From Salpingoeca rosetta (taxonomy: Eukaryota; Protista; Choanoflagellata), in NCBI GenBank assembly GCA_033442325.1, contig JAWQFM010000019.1:144952-194376 (forward strand): 49,425 bases of DNA, in the 5' to 3' direction. The first letter of the stretch is position 1, and every line of letters begins with the position of its first letter. Below the pieces are notes generated by a model. That model did no database searches. It was given only the letters and a program-made list of their open reading frames with translations, and was not told where the DNA came from. A program made the position numbers and the translations under genes. This document shows, in pieces, positions 38,586-48,909 of this stretch.

Positions 38586-40767
38586 TCACGGCGTCGCCGG
38601 CTTTGCCTCGTGGTGGAAGATGAGGATGGCGCGAACGAGCACGGCGTCCGGGGTGTTGACCACAATCTCCGACACGGGCCGCGCAGACACCTTCTTGCCG
38701 CCAACTTTTTGCTTCTTCGTCCAATCACTGTGGGACCTGAACGGTTTCGCCTGCTGGACATCCTGCTTGGTAAAGTCCGTGACAACAACGTGCGCATCGT
38801 GCCCGGCAACGAGCGTCTTCCCCACGTGCTGCAGGTCAATCACGGGGTATGGGTTGCCGTACACAACATCGCACACGAGAACGACGTTGAAGGTGCCCTT
38901 GCCATCCAGCTTCAAGCCGTGCAGCTCCTTGGGAACTTTGCTGCCGGGGCAGGGGCGCGCGTACGCCAGCGCATACTCGAGGTCTGGCGTGAAGTAGAAG
39001 CCGGAGCCGTACCAGCCCTGGTCCGTGGTCTGCAGCTGGGCAAATTCGCCACCCAGGATGCCCACCGCGGCTTCAAGCGAGGGCACGCCGTGGAACACGC
39101 GCTGGATGCGCACGTTGGACTGGTCCTGGTTCAGCAGGTGGTACTTGAAGTTGCTCATGCCGCCCAACTTGCACACGTACCCGAGCACATGCTTCATCTC
39201 CTTGTTCTTTGGGTGCCCGTTCTGGTCCAGCTGGTATTTGGGGCGAAACACGTGGTGCGCCGTGGTGGTGTTGCCCTTGAATCTGGCCTGGTCGCGCTGG
39301 ATGACGCCATTGAAGGCCGTGTTCTTCACGTCGGAGTGCACAATCGCCGCGCCGGCAACATGGCGCCCAAACGGGTGCTCCGCCTTCTCCCGTGACGTGC
39401 GCCCGCCTGCCTCGTCCAACAGCTGCATGACGTGTTTGGGGGGGGGATGGGGGTCGACAAGTGAGACGTGGGGCAGTGGGCGCCGAGTGGGAGCATCCAA
39501 AAGCACTCACGCAAATCATCACAGCGAGGAACAAAACGTGTGGCTCGTATGGTTCATATGGTTGCATCCCACACTAACACACGCACACACACGCACGCAC
39601 GCACGCACATGCGCACACACATGCATACACACACACGCGCACGCACGCACACACACATGCACAAACGAACGCGCACCTGCTGGATGAGTTGAAAGTTGGT
39701 GTCGTCGTAGAGGTCGAGAACAGCACAGCTGACAGATTTGCGGGCCTGCACCTGGACGGCCTTGTCTGAGAGTTTCGCCCACACATCCTCGGGAAACTTC
39801 CAGGGAGCATCTGGTGGCCCATGCAAAAGCAGATGCTGTTGCTCCTCGTCCACTTGTTTCTGGTGTTTCTCGGCAATGTATTGCGGCTGCAGTGTCTTGC
39901 GGAGCACACGGAAGGAGGTGCGCAGATCCGCTGGCTGAAAGCACTTGCTCAGCACTTCAATCATCAACTTGTCAAGCGTCTGCCCGTTGATGGACTTGTC
40001 GAGTGGAAGGTACTTGTTCTTGTCGTAGAATGCCTCGATCGTCTCCTGCTCGTGGTTTTCAAGGTGGTGCCATGGCTTGATGCCAAACATCAGCTCCCAC
40101 ACCACACATCCGTACGAAAACACGTCCGTGGATGACTTGAGCGCCTTGCCCGCCAGCTGCTCCGGGCTTGCCCACAGCGTGGTGCCCGGCATCTTGGACA
40201 CTTCTGAAGAGTCTGCTGCCTTGAATGCGCTGAGGCCAAAGTCGCACACCTGCGCCGTCATGTGCTCCGTCAGCAGCACGTTGCCGCTCTTCAGGTCGCG
40301 GTGCACAACATTGCGCATGTGCAGGAACTCCATTCCGCTGGCAATCTCGCACGCAATACGCAGCTTGTCCACCTTCGTCAGCGGCGCCTGGCCAGGGTCC
40401 CGTTCGTGCAGGTAGGAGGAGAGGGAGCCGTGCTCCGCCCAGGGCATCATGATGAAGAAGCGGTCGTCGCCGTCCTTGCACGTGCCCAGCAGCGGCACAA
40501 TGTGCGGGTGGCGCAGGCTGGCCATTGCCTTGAGCTCACGCAGCACACGCCGGTCGTGCAGGCGGAGTTTGCTCGTGTCCCCGCACAGCCAATACTTGAT
40601 GTCGGGGACATGGGACACTTCAACCTCCTTCAGCGCCACCTGCAGCCCACCAAAGAGGCCAGTCCAGATTTTACCCTGTCCGCCTTTGAGTGGGCCTTCC
40701 TTTCCAAGCGCACGCTTCCGATCTTCAACGCAATCAATGCCCAGGTGGAAGTTCAGCACGCGCTCTG

Positions 40768-40838
<71 letters not shown>

Positions 40839-41563
40839 ACGTTAGAGAAGGCGTGTTTGATAACATATGACAGCGAACAACAGCGGGTGTGCGCTTCAAC
40901 CAATCAAGAGAAGAACGCAGAAGATCCCATGTCAAGTGACACATCATCACACAGCAACAGAGGCAAGCTGTCTGTAACAACCGGTCGCAAAGGACAGGGC
41001 GACACCAAGAAATGAATGCCTGCACGCACCAATGGCGGAGGCGGCGGCCCTGTACGCGTCATCCTCGGTGTGCGACTGCTTCAATTTCTGCAGCTCGTGC
41101 TCTGCACGACAGGGAAAAAGGGACACACATGCAAAGACAGGGGTGGTGGGTGAGGGAGAGCACAGCATGCACATTTGAGAGGGTGACAACCAACGAGAGT
41201 AAGGAAACAGCCCATGAAGACGGACAAGAGAAGCTGCGTTGTCACACATCACGACACTTACCAAGTGCCTTCATCTGATCCTGTGCAGATTGCAGACTAA
41301 CCACCGTCTTGACAAGCTTGTCGTCTGTGTATGTGTGTGTGTGTTTGTGTGGGGGGGGGGATGCAGATGTGCATTGCAATGTGTGAGTTTAGAGTACTGG
41401 GACAAAATGGGAGGAATGGCAAAAAAAAAAAAACTTCGGCAGAGGGATAACTGTAGTCACTGCATCGGCATGCACAGAGCAACGTACCCAACTTCTGCTT
41501 GCCAATCTCCAATTCCTTCACTTTCGCCGTCGCCTCTCGCAGGCGCTGATCTGTTTTGTTTGA

Positions 41564-41623
<60 letters not shown>

Positions 41624-42119
41624 AATTGTGAACAACGTGCCTCTTGCCCTTGTGTGCGTTTGTATGTGTGTGAACAACGTGCCTCTTGCCCTTGTGTGTG
41701 TGTGTGTGTGTGTGCCAACTCACCAATCTGTTTCCTCTCCCGCTCCTCCAGGGACGCGGTCTCTTGTGCCGCGTGCAATTTCTTCTGCAGCGTCTTGTTC
41801 TCCTCACCTGCCCGCAAGTTTCACGTGCAAGTTGTACAAAGCCACCAAGCAACACTCACACGCGTGTGAGAACAACAACGGAAACAAAGGGCAGCATGTG
41901 TGCATCACACACGCGTACGGGTGTCCCCGTATCACTGATGACCATTCAAGATGCATGTGTGAGCATACATACTGTTGAAGCACCATCGACATACCCAGGC
42001 GAGCGGCCTTTCTTGTAGCATCCTCAAGCTTCTGGCTGTATTCTTTCCGAAGCGATGCAATCTCTGCTCCGGCCGCCGCAATCTTCTCCCCTGTGAACAC
42101 ACACACACACACACACACA

Positions 42120-42159
<40 letters not shown>

Positions 42160-44423
42160 TACACACGCATTGGAATGAGGCAGAAGCGTCACCCGATGAT
42201 GATGGCGATAATCATGGTGAGAAAGGGACGTGCAAGCTAACATTCCTGTACACTACAAGCATTCACACGCACATAGCATAGCTACACACATGTACATCCA
42301 CGCACATCCACGCACACACGCATGCACATCCACATCCACACACACCAACAACAACCACGTGTGCAACGTACGAAGGTCTTTGGCCTGCTGGTCGCGTGCC
42401 TCTGCATCCTTCGCCGTCTTCTCCTTGTGGTCTTTCAGTTCCGTGCGGACCCGCCGCAGATCCTCCTCTGTACACGTGCACGCGTGGGGACCAGGAGGGG
42501 TGGAAGGGGATTGGGTGTGAGGAACACGTGGGATGACATGTTGGTTTTGGGAGGAGGGGTGGTGTTTGGGCCACCACGGGCGAGTGAATGCAAGAACACA
42601 TCGGGCACAGAACGCACGCACACACCCCCAACATACACGTGACATCCACACAGACGCACCTGCTGTGTGCAGCGCCTCCTTCTTCTTTTTGTTCACAGTC
42701 GCGAATGTTTTTTGTGCCGCCATCAAGTTCGACCCTGCAGTGTAGAAGCGAAGGGAATGCAGATGATATGCGTGAGTATGTGTGTATGTATATATGTGTG
42801 CGTATGTAGGGTGTGTGTGCGTGTGTGTGTGTTGATTCGGAGGGAGAGAGCAGAATGGCGGTGACAGCGATGGAAAAGTGTGTGCATTCCACATGTTGGT
42901 GCAAGGGTTCAGCGTACGCATGTTTTCTTCCTTCTTCTTCCACAACGCTAGGGTATCCTGCAGCTGCTTGACCGTCTCTTTGTGCTCCGTGGCTTCATAA
43001 TGTGTGTGTGTGTGTGTGTGTGTGTGAGCGAGTTTGTATGCATGTGAGCGAGTGTGTGAGTGCATGTGTGTGCGTGTGCGTGTGCGTGTGCGTGTGCATG
43101 TGCGTGCATGGAGCTAGCGCCAGGCGTGCTGCGGCTGCAAATATTGTGCTTTCGCTCACCAGCGGTGGCGACTTTTGTTCGCAGCTCCGAGATGACACCG
43201 TCTGTACCACAGAACAGCATTGACGTGAGCACGCAGAGACAACAATGAACACAAACAACCACGCAGGCAAGCAACCACGCATGCAACGTCACCTGCGTGT
43301 TGGGCGCGGAGAGCTTGCGTGCGGTATTTCTCTTCAAGCGCGCGCTCTGCATGTGTTTGAGATGATGCATGGCGATTTGGGTGCGGGGCCGTCAGTGCGT
43401 GGTGATGAGGCAGTGATATAAGTGGGCTGCAATCACAGAGACAGATTGACACCCACACATGTAAATATTCACACACATGTAAATATTCACACACACACAC
43501 ACATGCATTCGCACACTGACACCCACGCAATCAAACACCACACACACACACACACTCTCTCTCTCTCTCATTCAAAGAAACACCACACGCAAACAAAACA
43601 CATTCACACGCAAACAACGCACGTGACTCTGCTGCCGCCTCCTTATCGCGTTCGCGGCGCTGCTTCTGGCGCTCGAATTCGCGCTTCCAGTAGTTCACCT
43701 TCCTCTTCAGGTCCTCCTTCTCCTCAGAGGCGTCTGCAATCGGACTCGCATCGCCTGGCCTGTGCGCATGCGCGTGCGCGTGGTGCCCAGATGAGGGTGC
43801 TGTGGTGGATGAGGTTTGGTGCGGTGAGTGCTGGGTTGACTGCACTTCGGCGTCGCCTTGCGGGCGGTAGTAGGGCTGCGAGAACGACGACGCTGACGAC
43901 GAGTGTGATGGCAATGGCGATGACATGCTGGGGGGCGGTGATGTGAACATGTCAGCAGGGTATGCTGTGCGCAGCGGTGCTGGTGGGCTGAATGTGGTAG
44001 ACGCAGGGGGCTCCGAGTCTGCAGCAGGGGTGGAGGTGCCCTGGTCTGATAGTGTTGGTGTTCGCAGCTCCGACCGAAAGTGCGGCATGTCATTCTCATG
44101 CAGCCTGCACACATGGTGCATGTGTGTATGTGTATGTGTGTGTGTGTGTATGTGTGTGTATGTGTGTATGCGTGTGTATGTGTGTGTATGTGTGTGTGAG
44201 GGGGGGGGAAGCAACAGGCACGAGAACGGCAGGCAGACGGTGAAGCTTAGGCAGTGCCAGCAGCTCACGTGATCTGAACGTTGTTTCCGGTTGCCCTGAC
44301 GACAGCTGCGATCATCCGAGCTCCAAGCTCTCCAAGCTCATTCCCCAGCAAACTGCAGCAGGCACAAGAAGCGAAGACGAATGGAATCGAAGGTGTCGGT
44401 AGTGTGTGTGTGTAAGTGTGTGT

Positions 44424-44456
<33 letters not shown>

Positions 44457-45767
44457 TGTGTGTGAGTGTGACTGTTGTGAGTGTGCATACACCCACTTGA
44501 ATATAGCAGGTGCGTATGCTCATGCAACACAATAATGCGCAGAGCAACACAACAAAGAGATGCAAAACGACAGCACCACACGAAACGAGAGAACGCGCAC
44601 GATACCTGATTTGGACGAGGGTATTGTTGTTGTTGATGAGGTTTGTGATGGTTGTGGCGGCAGCTGATGTCAACTTTGTGTCCTTCAACCTGTGTCCATG
44701 GCAGAGCACATGCATTGTAAGCTGCTGCCAACTTACACTTGTAGCGAAGGCACTGACAAACCAGTCAAACAGACAGACACACAGACACACAGACACATAG
44801 GCAGACACACACATAGGCAGACAGACAGACAGACAGACAGACACACAGACACACAGACAGACACATAGGCAGACACATAGGCAGACACACAGACACACAG
44901 ACAGACACTACACGACACACACAGACAGACAGAGATGNNNNNNNNNNNNNNNNNNNNNNNNNNNNNNNNNNNNNNNNNNNNNNNNNNNNNNNNNNNNNNN
45001 NNNNNNNNNNNNNNNNNNNNNNNNNNNNNNNNNNNNNCAACCCCAAGAAAACACACATGCACAATATGTGACGTACATGAGTTTGTGCAGACTGGTGTTT
45101 CCAATGAGACGGCCCGCCAGTCGCTCCAGACCTTCGTCGCCGAGCAGGTTCTGGCCAACGCTAATGGTGTAAAGGGAGAGGGAGGTGGCGGTGATGAGTG
45201 AACAGCAAACGTGATGGGACGAGGGTTGATGAGCACCGTTGGCAGATACACACATGAAGTACGAACATGAAATCAACCCCGCGCAAGCCAAACACGCGTG
45301 CGTGAAGGCGGACTGACTTGAGTAGTTTAATGCCTGGGTTTGCTTCGATGAGCTCGCCCAGGATGGAGCCGGCCTCTGCTGTGAGGAGATTGCCAAACAG
45401 CCTGCGACACACCATGCAGCGACGCAATCAGCACTAGAGACGCAGAGAGCGTAGGGGGGAACGCGCGCCCAACATATGGAGAGAGGGGGGACGGGAGAGA
45501 TAGGGAGAGAGGGGGGAGGGAGACGCACACGCACACGCACACGCACACGCACACGCACACGCACACACATGGAGGAAACACTAAAACAGCTGCGACACAC
45601 ATGCGTACATGCGCACTCACAGAAGCTTGCTGGGCCCAGTGACGAGCTTGAGGGCATTGGCGATGGCGCGCAGCCCATCCGTGCCAATGTTGTTGTTGCC
45701 CAGACTGCATGATGATTTGGAAGGGAAGCAATGTTGAAACATCGAGCACGACCGTTGTGCGCGCGCA

Positions 45768-45860
<93 letters not shown>

Positions 45861-46726
45861 AGAGGTTTGTGCATCACGTTGAACTGGGAAATCAGGTGTA
45901 TTGTTGTGAAATGACCACGAAATGAGGCATGACTATCCGCACAATCAATCAACACGTACTTGAGCGAGTCGATGGTGTGGTCGGGCGTGAACCCTTTGGC
46001 CAAGATCCTGGCCCCTTTCCCACCGATGTCGCATTTGTTGAACCTGCCAGACCAAAGACGGCAACAGCAAAACGAGGAGCGGTGAAATGACGTGGTGGCT
46101 GCAGATTGTGCACAAGTGGACGCATACGGCAATACCCACAAGACAGAGCGGCATGCATACACAAGTGAGCGGAGGTTGGTGTTCTTCCTGATGGCCTTGG
46201 CCAGCTCCTCCAAGTGTTCGTGGTCAATCGCCTTGCACCTGCGTGTGGGACAGGGGGGGTTGTGTTTGAGACAGTGAGTGAGTGAGTGAGTGAGTGAGTG
46301 AGTGAGTGAGTGAGTGAGTGAGTGAGTGAGTGTGTGAGTGAGTGTGTGAGTGAGTGAGTGAGTGAGTGAGTGAGTGAGTGAGTGAGTGAGTGAGTGAGTG
46401 AGTGAGTGAGTGAGTGAGTGAGTGAGTGAGTGAGTGAGTGAGTGAGTGAGTGAGTGAGTGAGTGAGTGAGTGAGTGAGTGAGTGAGTGAGTGAGTGAGTG
46501 AGTGAGTGAGTGAGTAAGTAAGCAGCTTAGAGCAGTCTCTTGGCATCAAGGAAAGGCTGCCAACAACCCCAAATCACAGCACAGCACATCACAGCACGCA
46601 GCAGGACATCACAGCACGCAGCAGGACAATGCGGACACAAGGCGACAACGCAATCTGGACACACTTGAGGGTGGGCCCGCAAGTGCGCTTCTCCACGCTC
46701 TTGATCAAGTTTTCGATATCCTCCAT
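38586..46726 (-). CDS. Multidomain LRR (RI-like) - coiled coil - TKL Ser/Thr kinase - PARP-type ADP-ribosyltransferase protein, about 1250 aa, about 21 exons
   Basis: ATG at 46726. LRR exons 46161-46238, 45960-46043, 45621-45704, 45318-45401, 45077-45160, 44606-44689 and 44269-44352. Linker exon 43623-44104, then about ten phase-1 coiled-coil exons. Kinase exon 39677-40764 ([38 protein letters not shown]). ART exon 38586-39422 ([34 protein letters not shown]). All junctions are GT-AG and frame-compatible. Confidence 0.8.
46274..46515. repeat. (GAGT)n tetranucleotide microsatellite in intron 1 of the LRR-kinase-ART gene; similar (TCAC)n tracts at about 2623-2760 and 16071-16200
   Basis: Read directly from the sequence. 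Confidence 0.95.
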
Positions 46727-47526: not shown

Positions 47527-48061
47527 GCTCTCTCTCGCTCTCTGTATCAGTGCCTGTGCCTCTGCGAGCGTCGTATGCTCGCCCATTTCAATGATGACCC
47601 TGACGCCGACTGACACGCGACCGTATTGTCCACTGTAGGATTTGGAAGACATTGACATTGGGAAGCTGGAACAAGAGTGGGATATTGAGGACGACTTGGA
47701 GGATGACCTGCTGCACCGCAAGCCCGCAATGCCGGACATCCAGCCAGGCGGCAAAATCTCCGACGAGGTGTGTGCACACACGTGAATGTGCGTGCTTGGG
47801 GAGGGGAAGGGGGTGGAGAAATGGACACGTACGAGCTGTACCACGCTGCCCTCCTCTTGAACTCAACCCCATGTGCTCGGGTGTACTGACAGGCCATTCA
47901 ACAACTGCTCGGGACCCAAAATGCGGGCAAGCCCGTGATGATGTTTGTGACCATGGAGGATGACGACCGCGAAAAGAACGAGGAACTGGCAGAGTGAGTT
48001 GTATGCATGTGTGTGTGTTTGTACATGTGTGTGTGTGTGTGTACATGTGTGTTTACAAGTC

Positions 48062-48104
<43 letters not shown>

Positions 48105-48582
48105 ATGTGTGTTTACATGTGTGCGTGTGTGTCTACCTGTCTGTCATCCACGCAACTTTGCTGTCCAGTTTTCCTTGCTGGTCCTCTGTTTTTTCCTGCT
48201 CGGTGTTTGATGTCGACATGCTCGCTGCAGCGTTATCTCACAAACTTACTCCCTCTTCTCCACACCCGCCATGGCAGGATGTATGTGGCGAGCCTGAAGA
48301 ACAACCACATGCCTGTCAAGTCGTTCTTCATCGAGGACGATCACTTTGGGCTCATTGTCGACGACGGCAAGTTTACCAACAACGTCATTGACTTTCTCAA
48401 GCGGCAAGATGAGGTGGCCCAGGTCAGCCTGGACCAGAAGGACATGCTGCCTCCGCACCCAAAGACAGAGTACGTGCATGCAGTATTGGGACGCCTTGTC
48501 ACTCGGGTTGCTGTTGTGACGGTTGCTGTTGTCGCGGTTGTTGTCGCTGCTTCCCATGCAGCCGCTGTCTTTGTCTTGTCTG

Positions 48583-48630
<48 letters not shown>

Positions 48631-48909
48631 GTGTCTGCCTATCTGTCTGTACTCCTCTGCCTCTGTGCCTTGGTCTTGCTGCCCTTTGCTCTCGCCACCC
48701 CACGTACTGCTACTGTTTTGTTCCCTCCACCACCACGTCCTCCTCACCCCTTACCTGCCATGTCCCACAGTGCGCAGAAGCAGCAGCGGGAGAAGGAGAA
48801 ACAAGAGAAGAAGGAGAAGCTTGAGAAGTTGAAGGCGCTGCACAAGAAGAAGCAGAAGCTCGCAAAGAAGAAGCGGCGTAAAGCCCGCAAGGCAAAGGAC
48901 GACCTGTAG
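47011..48909 (+). CDS. MESD: MESD/Boca-like ER chaperone for LDLR/LRP beta-propellers; part of the gene lies in the gap 47097-47196
   Basis: Signal peptide MRLSAATV...LALVAMV. DIDIGKLEQEWDIEDDLE (cf. ADMARLLEQWEKDDDIE), GKPVMMFVTM (cf. GKTLMMFVTV), SLKNNHMPVKSFFIEDDH...DDG...VIDFLKRQD...VSLD. Lys-rich tail ending in the ER-retention signal KDDL*. Confidence 0.88.

Follow-up and report, generated by a model that had tools for sequence, protein, structure and literature searches.

The window, the whole 49,425-nucleotide stretch of Salpingoeca rosetta DNA that was analysed, contains on its minus strand (46726..38586) a gene of 21 exons encoding a product of 1256 amino acids (Table 1). S. rosetta is a close relative of animals. 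The protein combines RI-type LRRs, a linker, a long helical region, a TKL-type kinase and a PARP-like ADP-ribosyltransferase (ART) domain in a single chain.

Gene structure and transcript

The first-pass annotation had joined these parts into one frame through canonical splice sites and consistent phases. All 20 introns are indeed GT..AG with consistent phases, and the only change to the gene model was the end of exon 1, which was corrected from 46662 to 46665. The translation is identical, letter for letter, to the public S. rosetta protein XP_004990804.1 (EGD76964.1; F2UJ16). The same gene model is already in public databases, where it is annotated as 'serine/threonine protein kinase' and nothing more.

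Table 1. Positions of the gene, its exons, domains and key residues in the window.
Feature	Position	Strand	Remarks
Whole coding region	38586..46726	-	ATG at 46726, TGA at 38586-38588
Exon 1	46726-46665	-	
Exon 2	46238-46161	-	
Exon 3	46043-45960	-	
Exon 4	45704-45621	-	
Exon 5	45401-45318	-	
Exon 6	45160-45077	-	
Exon 7	44689-44606	-	
Exon 8	44352-44269	-	
Exon 9	44104-43623	-	
Exon 10	43346-43293	-	
Exon 11	43201-43160	-	
Exon 12	42992-42918	-	
Exon 13	42734-42660	-	
Exon 14	42467-42372	-	
Exon 15	42090-41995	-	
Exon 16	41807-41724	-	
Exon 17	41550-41488	-	
Exon 18	41324-41262	-	
Exon 19	41101-41030	-	
Exon 20	40764-39677	-	
Exon 21	39422-38586	-	
RI-type LRRs, aa 22-222	44083..46237	-	exons 2-8, plus short cap at start of exon 9
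Assembly gap, 100 N	44938..45037	.	inside intron 6 (44690-45076); coding sequence uninterrupted
Ser/Pro/Thr/His-rich linker, aa 223-344	43717..44082	-	within exon 9; from composition
Long helical region, aa 345-600	41076..43716	-	last part of exon 9 into exon 19; exons in phase 1-1
TKL-type Ser/Thr kinase, exon 20, with ~70-aa tail	39677..40764	-	Pfam match aa 657-906 = 40642-39893
Kinase K661	40630-40628	-	VALKE
Kinase D772	40297-40295	-	HRD (HRDLKSGN)
Kinase D790	40243-40241	-	DFG
Intron 20 (254 nt)	39423..39676	-	between kinase and ART exons; RNA joint 39422/39677
PARP-like (ARTD-fold) domain, exon 21, aa 979-1256 and stop codon	38586..39422	-	
ART H1089	39092-39090	-	
ART Y1121	38996-38994	-	
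ART Y1128	38975-38973	-	
ART E1230	38669-38667	-	

RNA evidence came from intron-less contigs of two studies (X4 and X6) and from stranded raw reads (X19 and X20). Contig X4 (4003 nt) covers exons 6 to 21. At 45160 it has a loose end that runs on into exon 5 and matches the end of that exon. Contigs and raw reads together joined all testable exons, with joints at 39422/39677, 41101/41262, 42467/42660, 43201/43293, 44352/44606 and 44687/45075. First mates mapped to the plus strand only, which fits RNA from the minus strand, and read depth at the kinase exon (6-9) was similar to that at exon 9 (7.5). Moreover, no clustered transcript starts or ends were reported within 39300-45200. The locus is therefore one real transcribed gene with one mRNA, rather than two genes with transcripts ending before, or starting at, the kinase exon.

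Two junctions had been singled out for checking. The junction from 39677 to 39422, linking kinase and ART exons, was confirmed by four X20 reads with four starts, one X19 read and both contigs. The junction from 41030 to 40764 was not listed as a direct joint because the neighbouring (CA)n repeat was masked; it is supported by length accounting, since the stretch left unlisted across it has in each contig exactly the length given by the model (X4, 289 nt; X6, 207 nt).

The masked junction and the 100-N gap inside the locus might suggest an annotation artefact, in which neighbouring genes for an LRR/coiled-coil protein and a kinase/ART protein were merged, or an exon was lost in the gap. We consider this extremely improbable. 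It is already contradicted by the RNA contigs, by the agreement between record lengths and model exon lengths, and by reads that span the gap. The joint at 44687/45075 skips 387 nt (CT..AC) with no letters in between, and was found in five X20 reads with four different starts, one X19 read and both contigs. Exon 6 is thus joined directly to exon 7 in the RNA, so that the gap conceals no exon and the frame is continuous.

Domains of the protein

The first-pass annotation expected about seven RI-type LRRs of 28 amino acids, and the exon register yielded exactly seven (aa 22-215), one per 84-nt phase-2 exon (78 nt in exon 2). The Pfam LRR_6 score of 27.8 bits exceeded the cut-off of 23.4. RI-type LRRs are general protein-binding modules, and calling them a 'sensor' is an assumption. 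The Pro/Ser linker that follows (aa 223-344) was recovered as well; it consists of 20% Ser, 16% Pro, 12% Ala and 10% Thr, a composition suggesting that it is probably disordered.

In the next 272 residues (aa 345-616), 69% are A, K, E, L, R or Q, with only four Pro and Gly in total. Homodimer prediction for this region gave a score of 0.43, compared to 0.00 for the best of three controls. The predicted contacts run i-to-i with 3-4 (heptad) spacing from residue 347 to 599, the runs agreed in at least 93% of the contacts, and partner pLDDT was at least 76. In benchmarks, 21 of 30 proteins whose solved structures are pairs of one chain reached the homodimer mark, as against none of 23 solved as single chains; for eukaryotes, the figures were 17 of 29 and 0 of 30. 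For the ~255-aa helix, the prediction is therefore a dimeric coiled coil with its two chains parallel and in register, which agrees with the ~240 aa of coiled coil proposed earlier. A crude test for a hydrophobic periodicity of 3.5 residues was not significant in this region (327 of 1000 shuffles reached it), and the dimer prediction may also reflect generic coiled-coil memory.

The kinase matched Pfam PK_Tyr_Ser-Thr (E = 1.9e-43 to 1.8e-42) and Pkinase (E = 7.7e-41). The nearest solved kinases with a matched stretch were CTR1, IRAK4, BRI1, TNNI3K and RAF, all TKL members. E692 and N777 are present in addition to the catalytic residues in Table 1. Judged by these residues, the kinase looks intact and active, as expected from its first description as an intact RD kinase.

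The last exon had been read as a PARP/ART domain with an H-Y-E triad. The proposed Pfam check turned out well for LRR_6 and PK_Tyr_Ser-Thr, but the PARP score (19.1-19.8 bits) remained under the gathering cut-off of 26.7. More distant relatives (P0025, P0026, P0038, P0040) do exceed this cut-off. Furthermore, all 51 matches of the family profile A1 in the PDB were PARP catalytic domains (best E = 3.4e-6), with ZAP/PARP13 first, followed by PARP4 and PARP12. The AF2 model of the domain, built with A1, had a pLDDT of 91.5 and a pTM of 0.90. Its top Foldseek matches were all PARP domains, and its protein-language-model neighbours were PARP clusters. VIA-align gave Z = 14.7 (rmsd 2.6, 158 aligned residues) for PARP14, and Z-scores of 13.6-14.7 over 151-173 residues for PARP14, 12, 10 and 15, tankyrase and RCD1. 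H1089, Y1121 and E1230 are kept, and D1187 is a further key residue. E1230 was identified as the PARP catalytic Glu from motif position, subfamily alignment and a fold alignment reaching residue ~271, rather than from a residue-level superposition; EEYVV of the aligned subfamily falls inside its Pfam PARP match. The domain is a divergent PARP-family ADP-ribosyltransferase domain with H-Y-E, and lacks a PARP1-type helical regulatory domain. The triad does not say whether the product would be mono- or poly-ADP-ribose, or what the target would be.

Gene family and proposed function

The S. rosetta genome contains 23 close copies and a further 13 that make up a Roc-COR-PARP-like subfamily, about 36 loci. 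We examined 22 of the 23 close copies, including the gene described here. A TKL kinase exon lies directly upstream of the ART exon in 17 of 21 family loci; kinase-less paralogs are named 'PARP catalytic domain-containing protein' in UniRef. The gene is not a singleton, since the genome holds at least 17 kinase-ART genes. Identity between paralogs is 39-50% in the kinase and ART domains and 17-30% in the LRRs and coiled coil. The ART domain also follows LRR-Roc-COR-TIR in paralog P0009 (PTSG_11903), Roc-COR in the 13-copy subfamily, and Ank repeats in Microstomoeca relatives. In this lineage-expanded family, the kinase and ART domains together form a conserved core, while the N-terminal repeats (LRR, Ank or none) vary. 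Proteins that combine a sensor or adaptor with an effector would be expected to show such a pattern. Outside S. rosetta, kinase-PARP fusions are found in Didymoeca, Paulinella, Apiculatamorpha and marine metagenomes. Full-text literature searches found no description of a kinase-PARP or LRR-PARP fusion, in line with the earlier remark that no characterised animal PARP is known to be fused to a kinase or LRRs.

The family also bears on whether the ART domain is catalytic. It could instead serve in regulation or binding, like the domains of ZAP/PARP13 and plant RCD1/SRO, in which case the protein would in function be just a scaffolded TKL kinase. The Pfam score under the cut-off, the inactive PARP domain of ZAP as top PDB profile match and the structural match to RCD1 (Z = 13.6) are in favour of this reading. 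Paralog P0023 has neither H nor E at the aligned positions, and a tandem copy carries D in place of E; therefore, degeneration does occur in this family. Yet H1089, Y1121, Y1128 and E1230 are all present in XP_004990804.1, whereas ZAP lacks the triad and has V in the aligned segment where the S. rosetta family has E. Moreover, H-Y-E is kept in 21 of the 22 examined copies at 36-50% identity to the gene described here, despite a divergence of ~50% or more, which argues for selection on catalysis. We consider a non-catalytic ART domain unlikely.

With a probability of roughly 0.6, we interpret the locus as a single gene whose product is a cytosolic signalling enzyme with several domains (LRR - linker - coiled coil - TKL kinase - ART) with a dimer-regulated, coupled output. 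The LRRs would offer a surface for protein or ligand binding. The ~250-aa parallel coiled coil would hold two chains in register as a constitutive dimer, placing two kinase-ART modules next to each other. A partner bound at the LRRs might then alter kinase trans-autophosphorylation, and phosphorylation and NAD+-dependent ADP-ribosylation may act as coupled output on the protein itself and on recruited substrates.

Our leading guess is a role in the response to microbes or stress, and the shuffling with LRR, Ank, Roc-COR and TIR domains makes an immune or cell-death role plausible. A rival reading, following the first-pass annotation, is a dedicated innate-immune or cell-death switch, in which the LRRs would sense a microbial or viral ligand, the coiled coil would drive higher-order assembly, and kinase activation would unleash the ART domain as effector, which would ADP-ribosylate targets or burn NAD+, stopping the infection or killing the cell. 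This reading is possible but rather doubtful. It would fit the large family, the three alternative N-terminal contexts of the ART domain and the antiviral ZAP/PARP13 as best profile match ahead of PARP4 and PARP12, and kinases fused directly to LRR and TIR are already known in choanoflagellates ('Kinase TLRs/TIRs'; PMC6040629). The variable N-termini around a conserved effector core fit as well, but rapid divergence is usual for LRR, Ank and coiled-coil regions whatever the protein family. The Z-scores for tankyrase and for the antiviral PARPs lie within one unit of each other. For the coiled coil, the prediction is a constitutive in-register dimer rather than an assembly induced by ligand, and the protein has no death-fold or TIR domain. 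It also has no NACHT or NB-ARC domain, and is therefore not an NLR.

Comparison with known systems

Like the S. rosetta domain, PARP10, 12, 14 and 15 and ZAP/PARP13 have an ARTD (diphtheria-toxin-like) fold and no PARP1 helical regulatory domain. In structure they match it best (Z 14.0-14.7, rmsd of 2.2-3.1, 152-163 residues), at a sequence identity of 13-18% to the human mono-ARTs, and ZAP and PARP12 rank high among the profile matches of the family as well. These human proteins have H-Y-I/L/T/Y triads or none, in contrast to H-Y-E in S. rosetta. To our knowledge, their partner domains are macro, WWE, CCCH zinc-finger, RRM and UIM, but never a kinase or LRRs.

Tankyrases (Ank - SAM - PARP) are built on the same logic, with repeats as a platform for binding, a module for self-association and, at the C-terminus, a PARP domain with H-Y-E. 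They match the ART domain structurally (Z 13.6-14.0 over 162-173 residues), and Microstomoeca relatives even use Ank repeats. However, tankyrases lack a kinase and have SAM instead of a coiled coil and Ank repeats instead of RI-type LRRs. With a profile E-value to tankyrase of ~1e-2, we rejected tankyrase orthology. ROCO/LRRK proteins likewise carry N-terminal LRRs and a TKL-group kinase in one chain, and the ART domain also ends Roc-COR proteins in the S. rosetta genome. The protein described here differs by a coiled coil in place of Roc GTPase and COR, and by the ART domain after the kinase.

The 'Kinase TLRs' and 'Kinase TIRs' of Richter et al. 2018, proposed to bypass multi-protein signalling complexes, are similarly choanoflagellate-specific LRR and kinase chains with an NAD+-linked or immune-type output (PMC6040629). 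They have a transmembrane segment and/or TIR, whereas the S. rosetta protein is soluble, with a coiled coil and a PARP-like end. PARP and ADP-ribosylation have zero occurrences in that paper (PMC6040629).

In animals, there is precedent for kinases and mono-ARTs acting on each other. Reported cases are modification of RIPK1 and RIPK3 by PARP12 (PMC12184365), regulation of PARP12 by PKD (PMC8740581), and modification of Aurora-A and PKC-delta by PARP10 (PMC9659153, PMC7558731). The RIPK1/RIPK3 and PARP12 pairs couple a TKL-type kinase to a PARP-family mono-ART, as in the S. rosetta fusion (PMC12184365). Among solved structures with a matched stretch, the S. rosetta kinase is nearest to proteins such as CTR1, IRAK4, BRI1 and RAF, and it gave no sign of RIPK orthology. 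The animal pairs are separate proteins that act in trans, whereas the two are fused in S. rosetta. The kinase-ART fusion thereby offers a 'Rosetta-stone' type link to kinase/mono-ART crosstalk in animals.

Gene model and transcript support

The minus-strand gene consists of 21 exons, with GT...AG ends at all introns and consistent phases throughout (see the table of features below). Exons 2-8 are of phase 2-2, with a length of 78 nt for exon 2 and 84 nt each for exons 3-8. Exons 10-19 are of phase 1-1, and exon 9 makes the switch between the two. The end of exon 1 was the sole correction to the naive reading. The translation matches P0001, the public copy of the gene product (EGD76964.1 / XP_004990804.1 / UniProt F2UJ16), letter for letter, and is listed under the name 'serine/threonine protein kinase [Salpingoeca rosetta]'. 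The gene model is therefore already in the public annotation. Simple repeats are frequent in the introns: there is a (CTCA)n microsatellite in intron 1, as read on the gene strand, and (CA)n or (GT)n tracts occur in most introns, in many cases immediately before the acceptor site. A neighbouring ORF gave a borderline Pfam match (24.6 bits vs a cut-off of 24.4) to Mesd, a chaperone of the LDL receptor and Wnt co-receptor.

Features of the kinase-ART gene and its surroundings (window coordinates; residues of the 1256-aa protein)
Feature	Window position	Residues	Details
Gene	46726..38586 (-)	1-1256	21 exons
Exon 1 end	46665
(CTCA)n microsatellite	46270-46540		intron 1; ~240 nt
(CA)n or (GT)n tracts	e.g. 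40765-40845, 41560-41620		40-70 nt
Intron 6	44690-45076
Assembly gap	44938-45037		100 N, within intron 6
RNA joints	39422|39677, 41101|41262, 41805|41993, 42467|42660, 42733|42917, 43201|43293, 43346|43623, 44352|44606, 44687|45075
Reads with deviating letters	40274-40305		loose ends at 40274 and 40305; G>A at 40295, G>T at 40298
LRR units		22-215	seven units of 28 aa
Linker		223-344
Helical region		345-616
Kinase exon (exon 20)	40764-39677		K661 (beta3 Lys), E692 (alphaC Glu), D772 (HRD), N777, D790 (DFG)
ART exon (exon 21)	39422-38586		H1089, Y1121, E1230
Mesd-like ORF	47994-48824 (+)

The first-pass annotation had joined the exons from the LRRs to the ART domain into a single frame. Such a frame might also arise as an artefact, either from two adjoining genes or from an exon hidden in the assembly gap. 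We mapped RNA to window 39300-45200, using two raw RNA-seq runs (X19 and X20) and RNA contigs from two other studies (X4 and X6), and the results rule out both artefacts. One X4 contig of 4003 nt covers exons 6 to 21 with no intron in it; past 45160, its loose end matches the end of exon 5 in reverse complement. All RNA joints were CT..AC on the plus strand, i.e. GT..AG on the minus strand, and first mates mapped to the plus strand only, the pattern that a standard stranded library gives for an mRNA from the minus strand. RNA depth was comparable at exon 9 (7.5) and the kinase exon (6-9), and within the mapped interval no transcript was reported to start or end internally. The joint across the gap was present in five reads with four different starts in X20, in one read in X19 and in both contigs, with zero letters in between. 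Hence, the gap hides no exon and the frame of the mRNA is continuous.

Two junctions around the kinase exon had been singled out for confirmation. The junction from 39677 to 39422 is among the RNA joints. The junction into 40764 lies next to a (CA)n tract that was masked, and the joint list does not contain it, but the contig stretches without listed joints fit the model exactly, with 289 nt in X4 (exons 16-19 plus 9 nt) and 207 nt in X6 (exons 17-19 plus 9 nt). Some reads in the kinase exon had loose ends and two deviating letters. These are transcripts of paralogous kinases that share the 30-mer coding for HRDLKSGN, and not the product of editing or of alleles of the studied gene.

Domain composition of the protein

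The N-terminal repeats were indeed RI-type LRRs, in about the number noticed at first: there is one unit per exon, in exon register, followed by a short cap, and LRR_6 (PF13516) scored 27.8 bits vs a cut-off of 23.4. The linker is rich in Ser, Pro, Ala, Thr and His. In the subsequent helical region A, K, E, L, R and Q make up 69% of the residues, and Pro and Gly together occur only four times. Homodimer prediction for this region gave a score of 0.43, compared with 0.00 for the best of three controls. Among proteins solved as homo-pairs, 21 of 30 reached the mark for this score, compared with none of 23 solved as single chains (for eukaryotes, 17/29 and 0/30, respectively). The runs agreed in at least 93% of their contacts, with a partner pLDDT of at least 76. 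The predicted interface pairs each residue with its own counterpart, at a 3-4 spacing over residues 347-599; this would imply a parallel, in-register coiled coil. A simple Fourier test found no significant heptad periodicity in residues 345-616. The models support, without proving, a parallel in-register dimer.

Exon 20 matched the Pfam profiles PK_Tyr_Ser-Thr (1.9e-43, 149 bits) and Pkinase (7.7e-41, 141 bits). All of the catalytic residues are kept, as expected for the intact kinase described earlier, and the HRDLKSGN motif is of the Ser/Thr type. The nearest solved kinases with a matched stretch (CTR1, IRAK4, BRI1, TNNI3K and RAF) are TKL members, and NCBI labels paralogs 'TKL protein kinase'. 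Profile, relatives and catalytic residues all fit the assignment of exon 20 to the TKL group.

The last exon, initially read as an H-Y-E ADP-ribosyltransferase, stayed below the gathering score of Pfam PARP (PF00644; 19.8 bits for exon 21 and 19.1 for the whole protein vs 26.7), but profile, fold and triad all favour that reading. Relatives numbered 179 in an exhaustive HMMER search; 23 had E <= 1e-30, and distant members of the domain family exceed the PF00644 cut-off with 28-34 bits. We built a profile, A1, from 39 of these relatives. Searched against the PDB, A1 matched 51 sequences, and all 51 were PARP catalytic domains; the best match was ZAP (3.4e-6), followed by PARP4 and PARP12 (~5e-5), and further matches included PARP10, PARP15, PARP16, PARP14 and tankyrases. 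AF2 modelled exon 21 with a pLDDT of 91.5 and a pTM of 0.90 from the 39-sequence alignment, whereas the single sequence gave a useless model (pLDDT 32.7). The best 50 PDB matches of the alignment-based model in Foldseek were all PARP domains (E from 5.8e-7). VIA-align aligned the model to PARP14 with Z 14.7 and an rmsd of 2.6 over 158 of 180 residues, and 378 chains reached Z >= 8; PARP14, PARP12, PARP10, PARP15 and tankyrase were tied within one Z unit of each other. Language-model neighbours were PARP clusters as well. Identity to solved PARPs is only 13-18%. By fold and profile, the domain is assigned to the PARP/ARTD superfamily, despite its Pfam score.

The triad was assigned from motif and alignment positions. 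H1089, in RVFHG, aligns with the FHG of PARP12, and Y1121, in GFYF, aligns with the GxYF of PARP12 and ZAP, with a second Tyr at 1128. E1230, in SEIVV, occupies a column in which 90% or more of the family have E; it aligns with the EEYVV of a Roc-COR subfamily, where this motif lies inside the Pfam PARP match. The helical regulatory domain of PARP1 type is absent from the ART domain. A MutY identity of exon 21 was discarded, with chance matches only (E >= 0.26) in a single-sequence phmmer search against the PDB. Foldseek against viral structures gave no sign of a viral origin: it returned only generic PARP-like proteins of giant viruses, iridoviruses and phages, no nearer than cellular PARPs.

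The ART family in S. rosetta and other protists

A1 gave 41 matches in the S. rosetta genome. Close copies (E <= 1e-67) account for 23 of them and a second subfamily (E about 1e-22 to 1e-27) for 13; a few are fragments. We studied 22 close copies at 21 loci, including the gene itself. H, Y and E were all kept in 21 of the 22, and one tandem copy had E replaced by D. A TKL kinase exon lies immediately upstream of the ART exon at 17 of the 21 loci. RI-type LRR exons, detected by their within-exon pattern as the repeats are split by introns, lie further upstream at at least 11 loci. Between paralogs, identity is 39-45% in the kinase and 36-50% in the ART domain, which form the conserved core, vs 22-29% in the LRRs and 17-31% in the coiled coil.

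Domain architectures of family members and distant relatives
Architecture	Proteins	Organism	Details
LRR-coiled coil-kinase-ART	P0002, P0005, P0008, P0013, P0171
Coiled coil-kinase-ART	P0003, P0010
ART alone or with short N-terminus	PTSG_08612, PTSG_09951		UniRef: 'PARP catalytic domain-containing protein'
LRR_6-Roc-COR-A-TIR-ART	P0009 / PTSG_11903	Salpingoeca rosetta	1728 aa
Ank-(coiled coil)-kinase-ART and Ank-ART		Microstomoeca roanoka
Distant kinase-PARP fusions		Didymoeca costata, Paulinella chromatophora, Apiculatamorpha spiralis, marine metagenomes
SidE_PDE-kinase-PARP	P0038 / P0153	Paulinella chromatophora	transcripts, 1267 aa; PF12252 104 bits, TKL-like kinase, PARP 34 bits
WD40-kinase-PARP(-like)	P0032	Apiculatamorpha spiralis	1009 aa
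Kinase-PARP and TPR-PARP	P0033, P0039, P0046	Didymoeca costata

PF00644 is absent from all precomputed Pfam lists for the family proteins. In the same lists, PF27087.1 is carried by LRR-bearing members and tracks the LRR-containing proteins. P0009 pairs TIR with a PARP-like domain, two outputs linked to NAD+, behind its ROCO switch.

Genes of the second subfamily code for Roc (32.6 bits) and COR-A (34.6 bits), and their last exon is PARP-like (25.3 bits) and ends in EEYVVSQEAQVLP (EEYVV...); a phmmer search of this PARP ORF against the PDB gave no matches. About 13 near-identical copies exist, including loci L001 (C34:10000-19500), L002, L003 and L004, and ORFs resembling RI-like LRRs lie upstream. 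Since 10 of the 13 copies, on contigs of known length, lie no more than ~100 kb from a contig end, they may represent a subtelomeric multicopy ROCO-ART family.

The named close relatives come from S. rosetta and M. roanoka only. Further away, the metagenomic kinase-PARP protein P0040 has a kinase of only 30% identity that is degenerate: it reads HGD for HRD and DMG for DFG. The SidE effectors of Legionella use a PDE together with an ART to produce phosphoribosyl-linked ubiquitin; by analogy, the domain composition of the Paulinella protein hints at a similar chemistry.

Possible role and comparison with known systems

A single polypeptide combines a binding platform, a long helix predicted to self-associate and two enzyme domains with intact catalytic residues. 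The architecture and the gene of the first-pass annotation were confirmed, and its interpretation of them found support in part only. PARP-family enzymes and TKL kinases are central to stress, antiviral and cell-death signalling in animals, where to our knowledge they are separate proteins. Their fusion in one gene predicts a functional coupling of phosphorylation with ADP-ribosylation. The coiled coil would keep two kinase-ART modules together, and a partner bound at the LRRs would alter their trans-autophosphorylation. Phosphorylation would then be coupled to ADP-ribosylation in the output, with the protein itself and recruited substrates as targets. In animals, such coupling is reported in trans, between PARP12 and RIPK1/3 (PMC12184365), between PARP12 and PKD (PMC8740581), and between PARP10 and both Aurora-A and PKC-delta (PMC9659153, PMC7558731).

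The association of the ART domain with LRR, Roc-COR, TIR and Ank domains, the expansion of the family and its pattern of variable sensors and conserved effectors suggest a possible role in defence or stress. Our broadest reading, to which we assign a chance of roughly one in five, goes further. The fusion would be a pre-metazoan form, in one chain, of the crosstalk between kinases and mono-ARTs that takes place in trans in animals (e.g. RIPK1/3 with PARP12). The ~36 genes for H-Y-E ADP-ribosyltransferases with links to LRR, Ank, Roc-COR and TIR would make up a choanoflagellate system of innate defence or cell fate, with ADP-ribosylation as its output, and not caspase or NF-kB signalling. If the family is defensive, an ADP-ribosylation arm would be added to the reconstructed pre-animal immune toolkit. 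With an ART domain that scores below the Pfam PARP threshold, the family will have escaped surveys by Pfam, both those of PARPs and those of immunity genes in choanoflagellates. S. rosetta is a tractable organism that can be edited by CRISPR.

Full-text and keyword searches of the literature turned up no account of kinase-PARP, LRR-PARP or ROCO-PARP proteins, and no matches to the accession numbers. No kinase-PARP or ROCO-PARP fusion was found in Perina 2014, Richter 2018 or the Stentor kinome preprint. The protein is real and uncharacterised rather than categorically new, because public databases already contain the gene with its model, and the PARP domain is auto-annotated in some paralogs.

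No Pfam match to NACHT or NB-ARC, the central NTPase domains of NLR / STAND sensors, was found in the 1256-aa protein at E <= 0.01, so that it is not an NLR. It is not a ROCO protein either, as Pfam found no Roc GTPase or COR in it; these domains are present in P0009 and the 13-copy subfamily. The protein resembles LRRK and other ROCO proteins in its combination of LRRs with a TKL kinase, and it shares with tankyrases the logic of repeats, an oligomerisation module and a PARP domain. Another parallel is offered by the 'Kinase TLR/TIR' fusions of choanoflagellates (PMC6040629).
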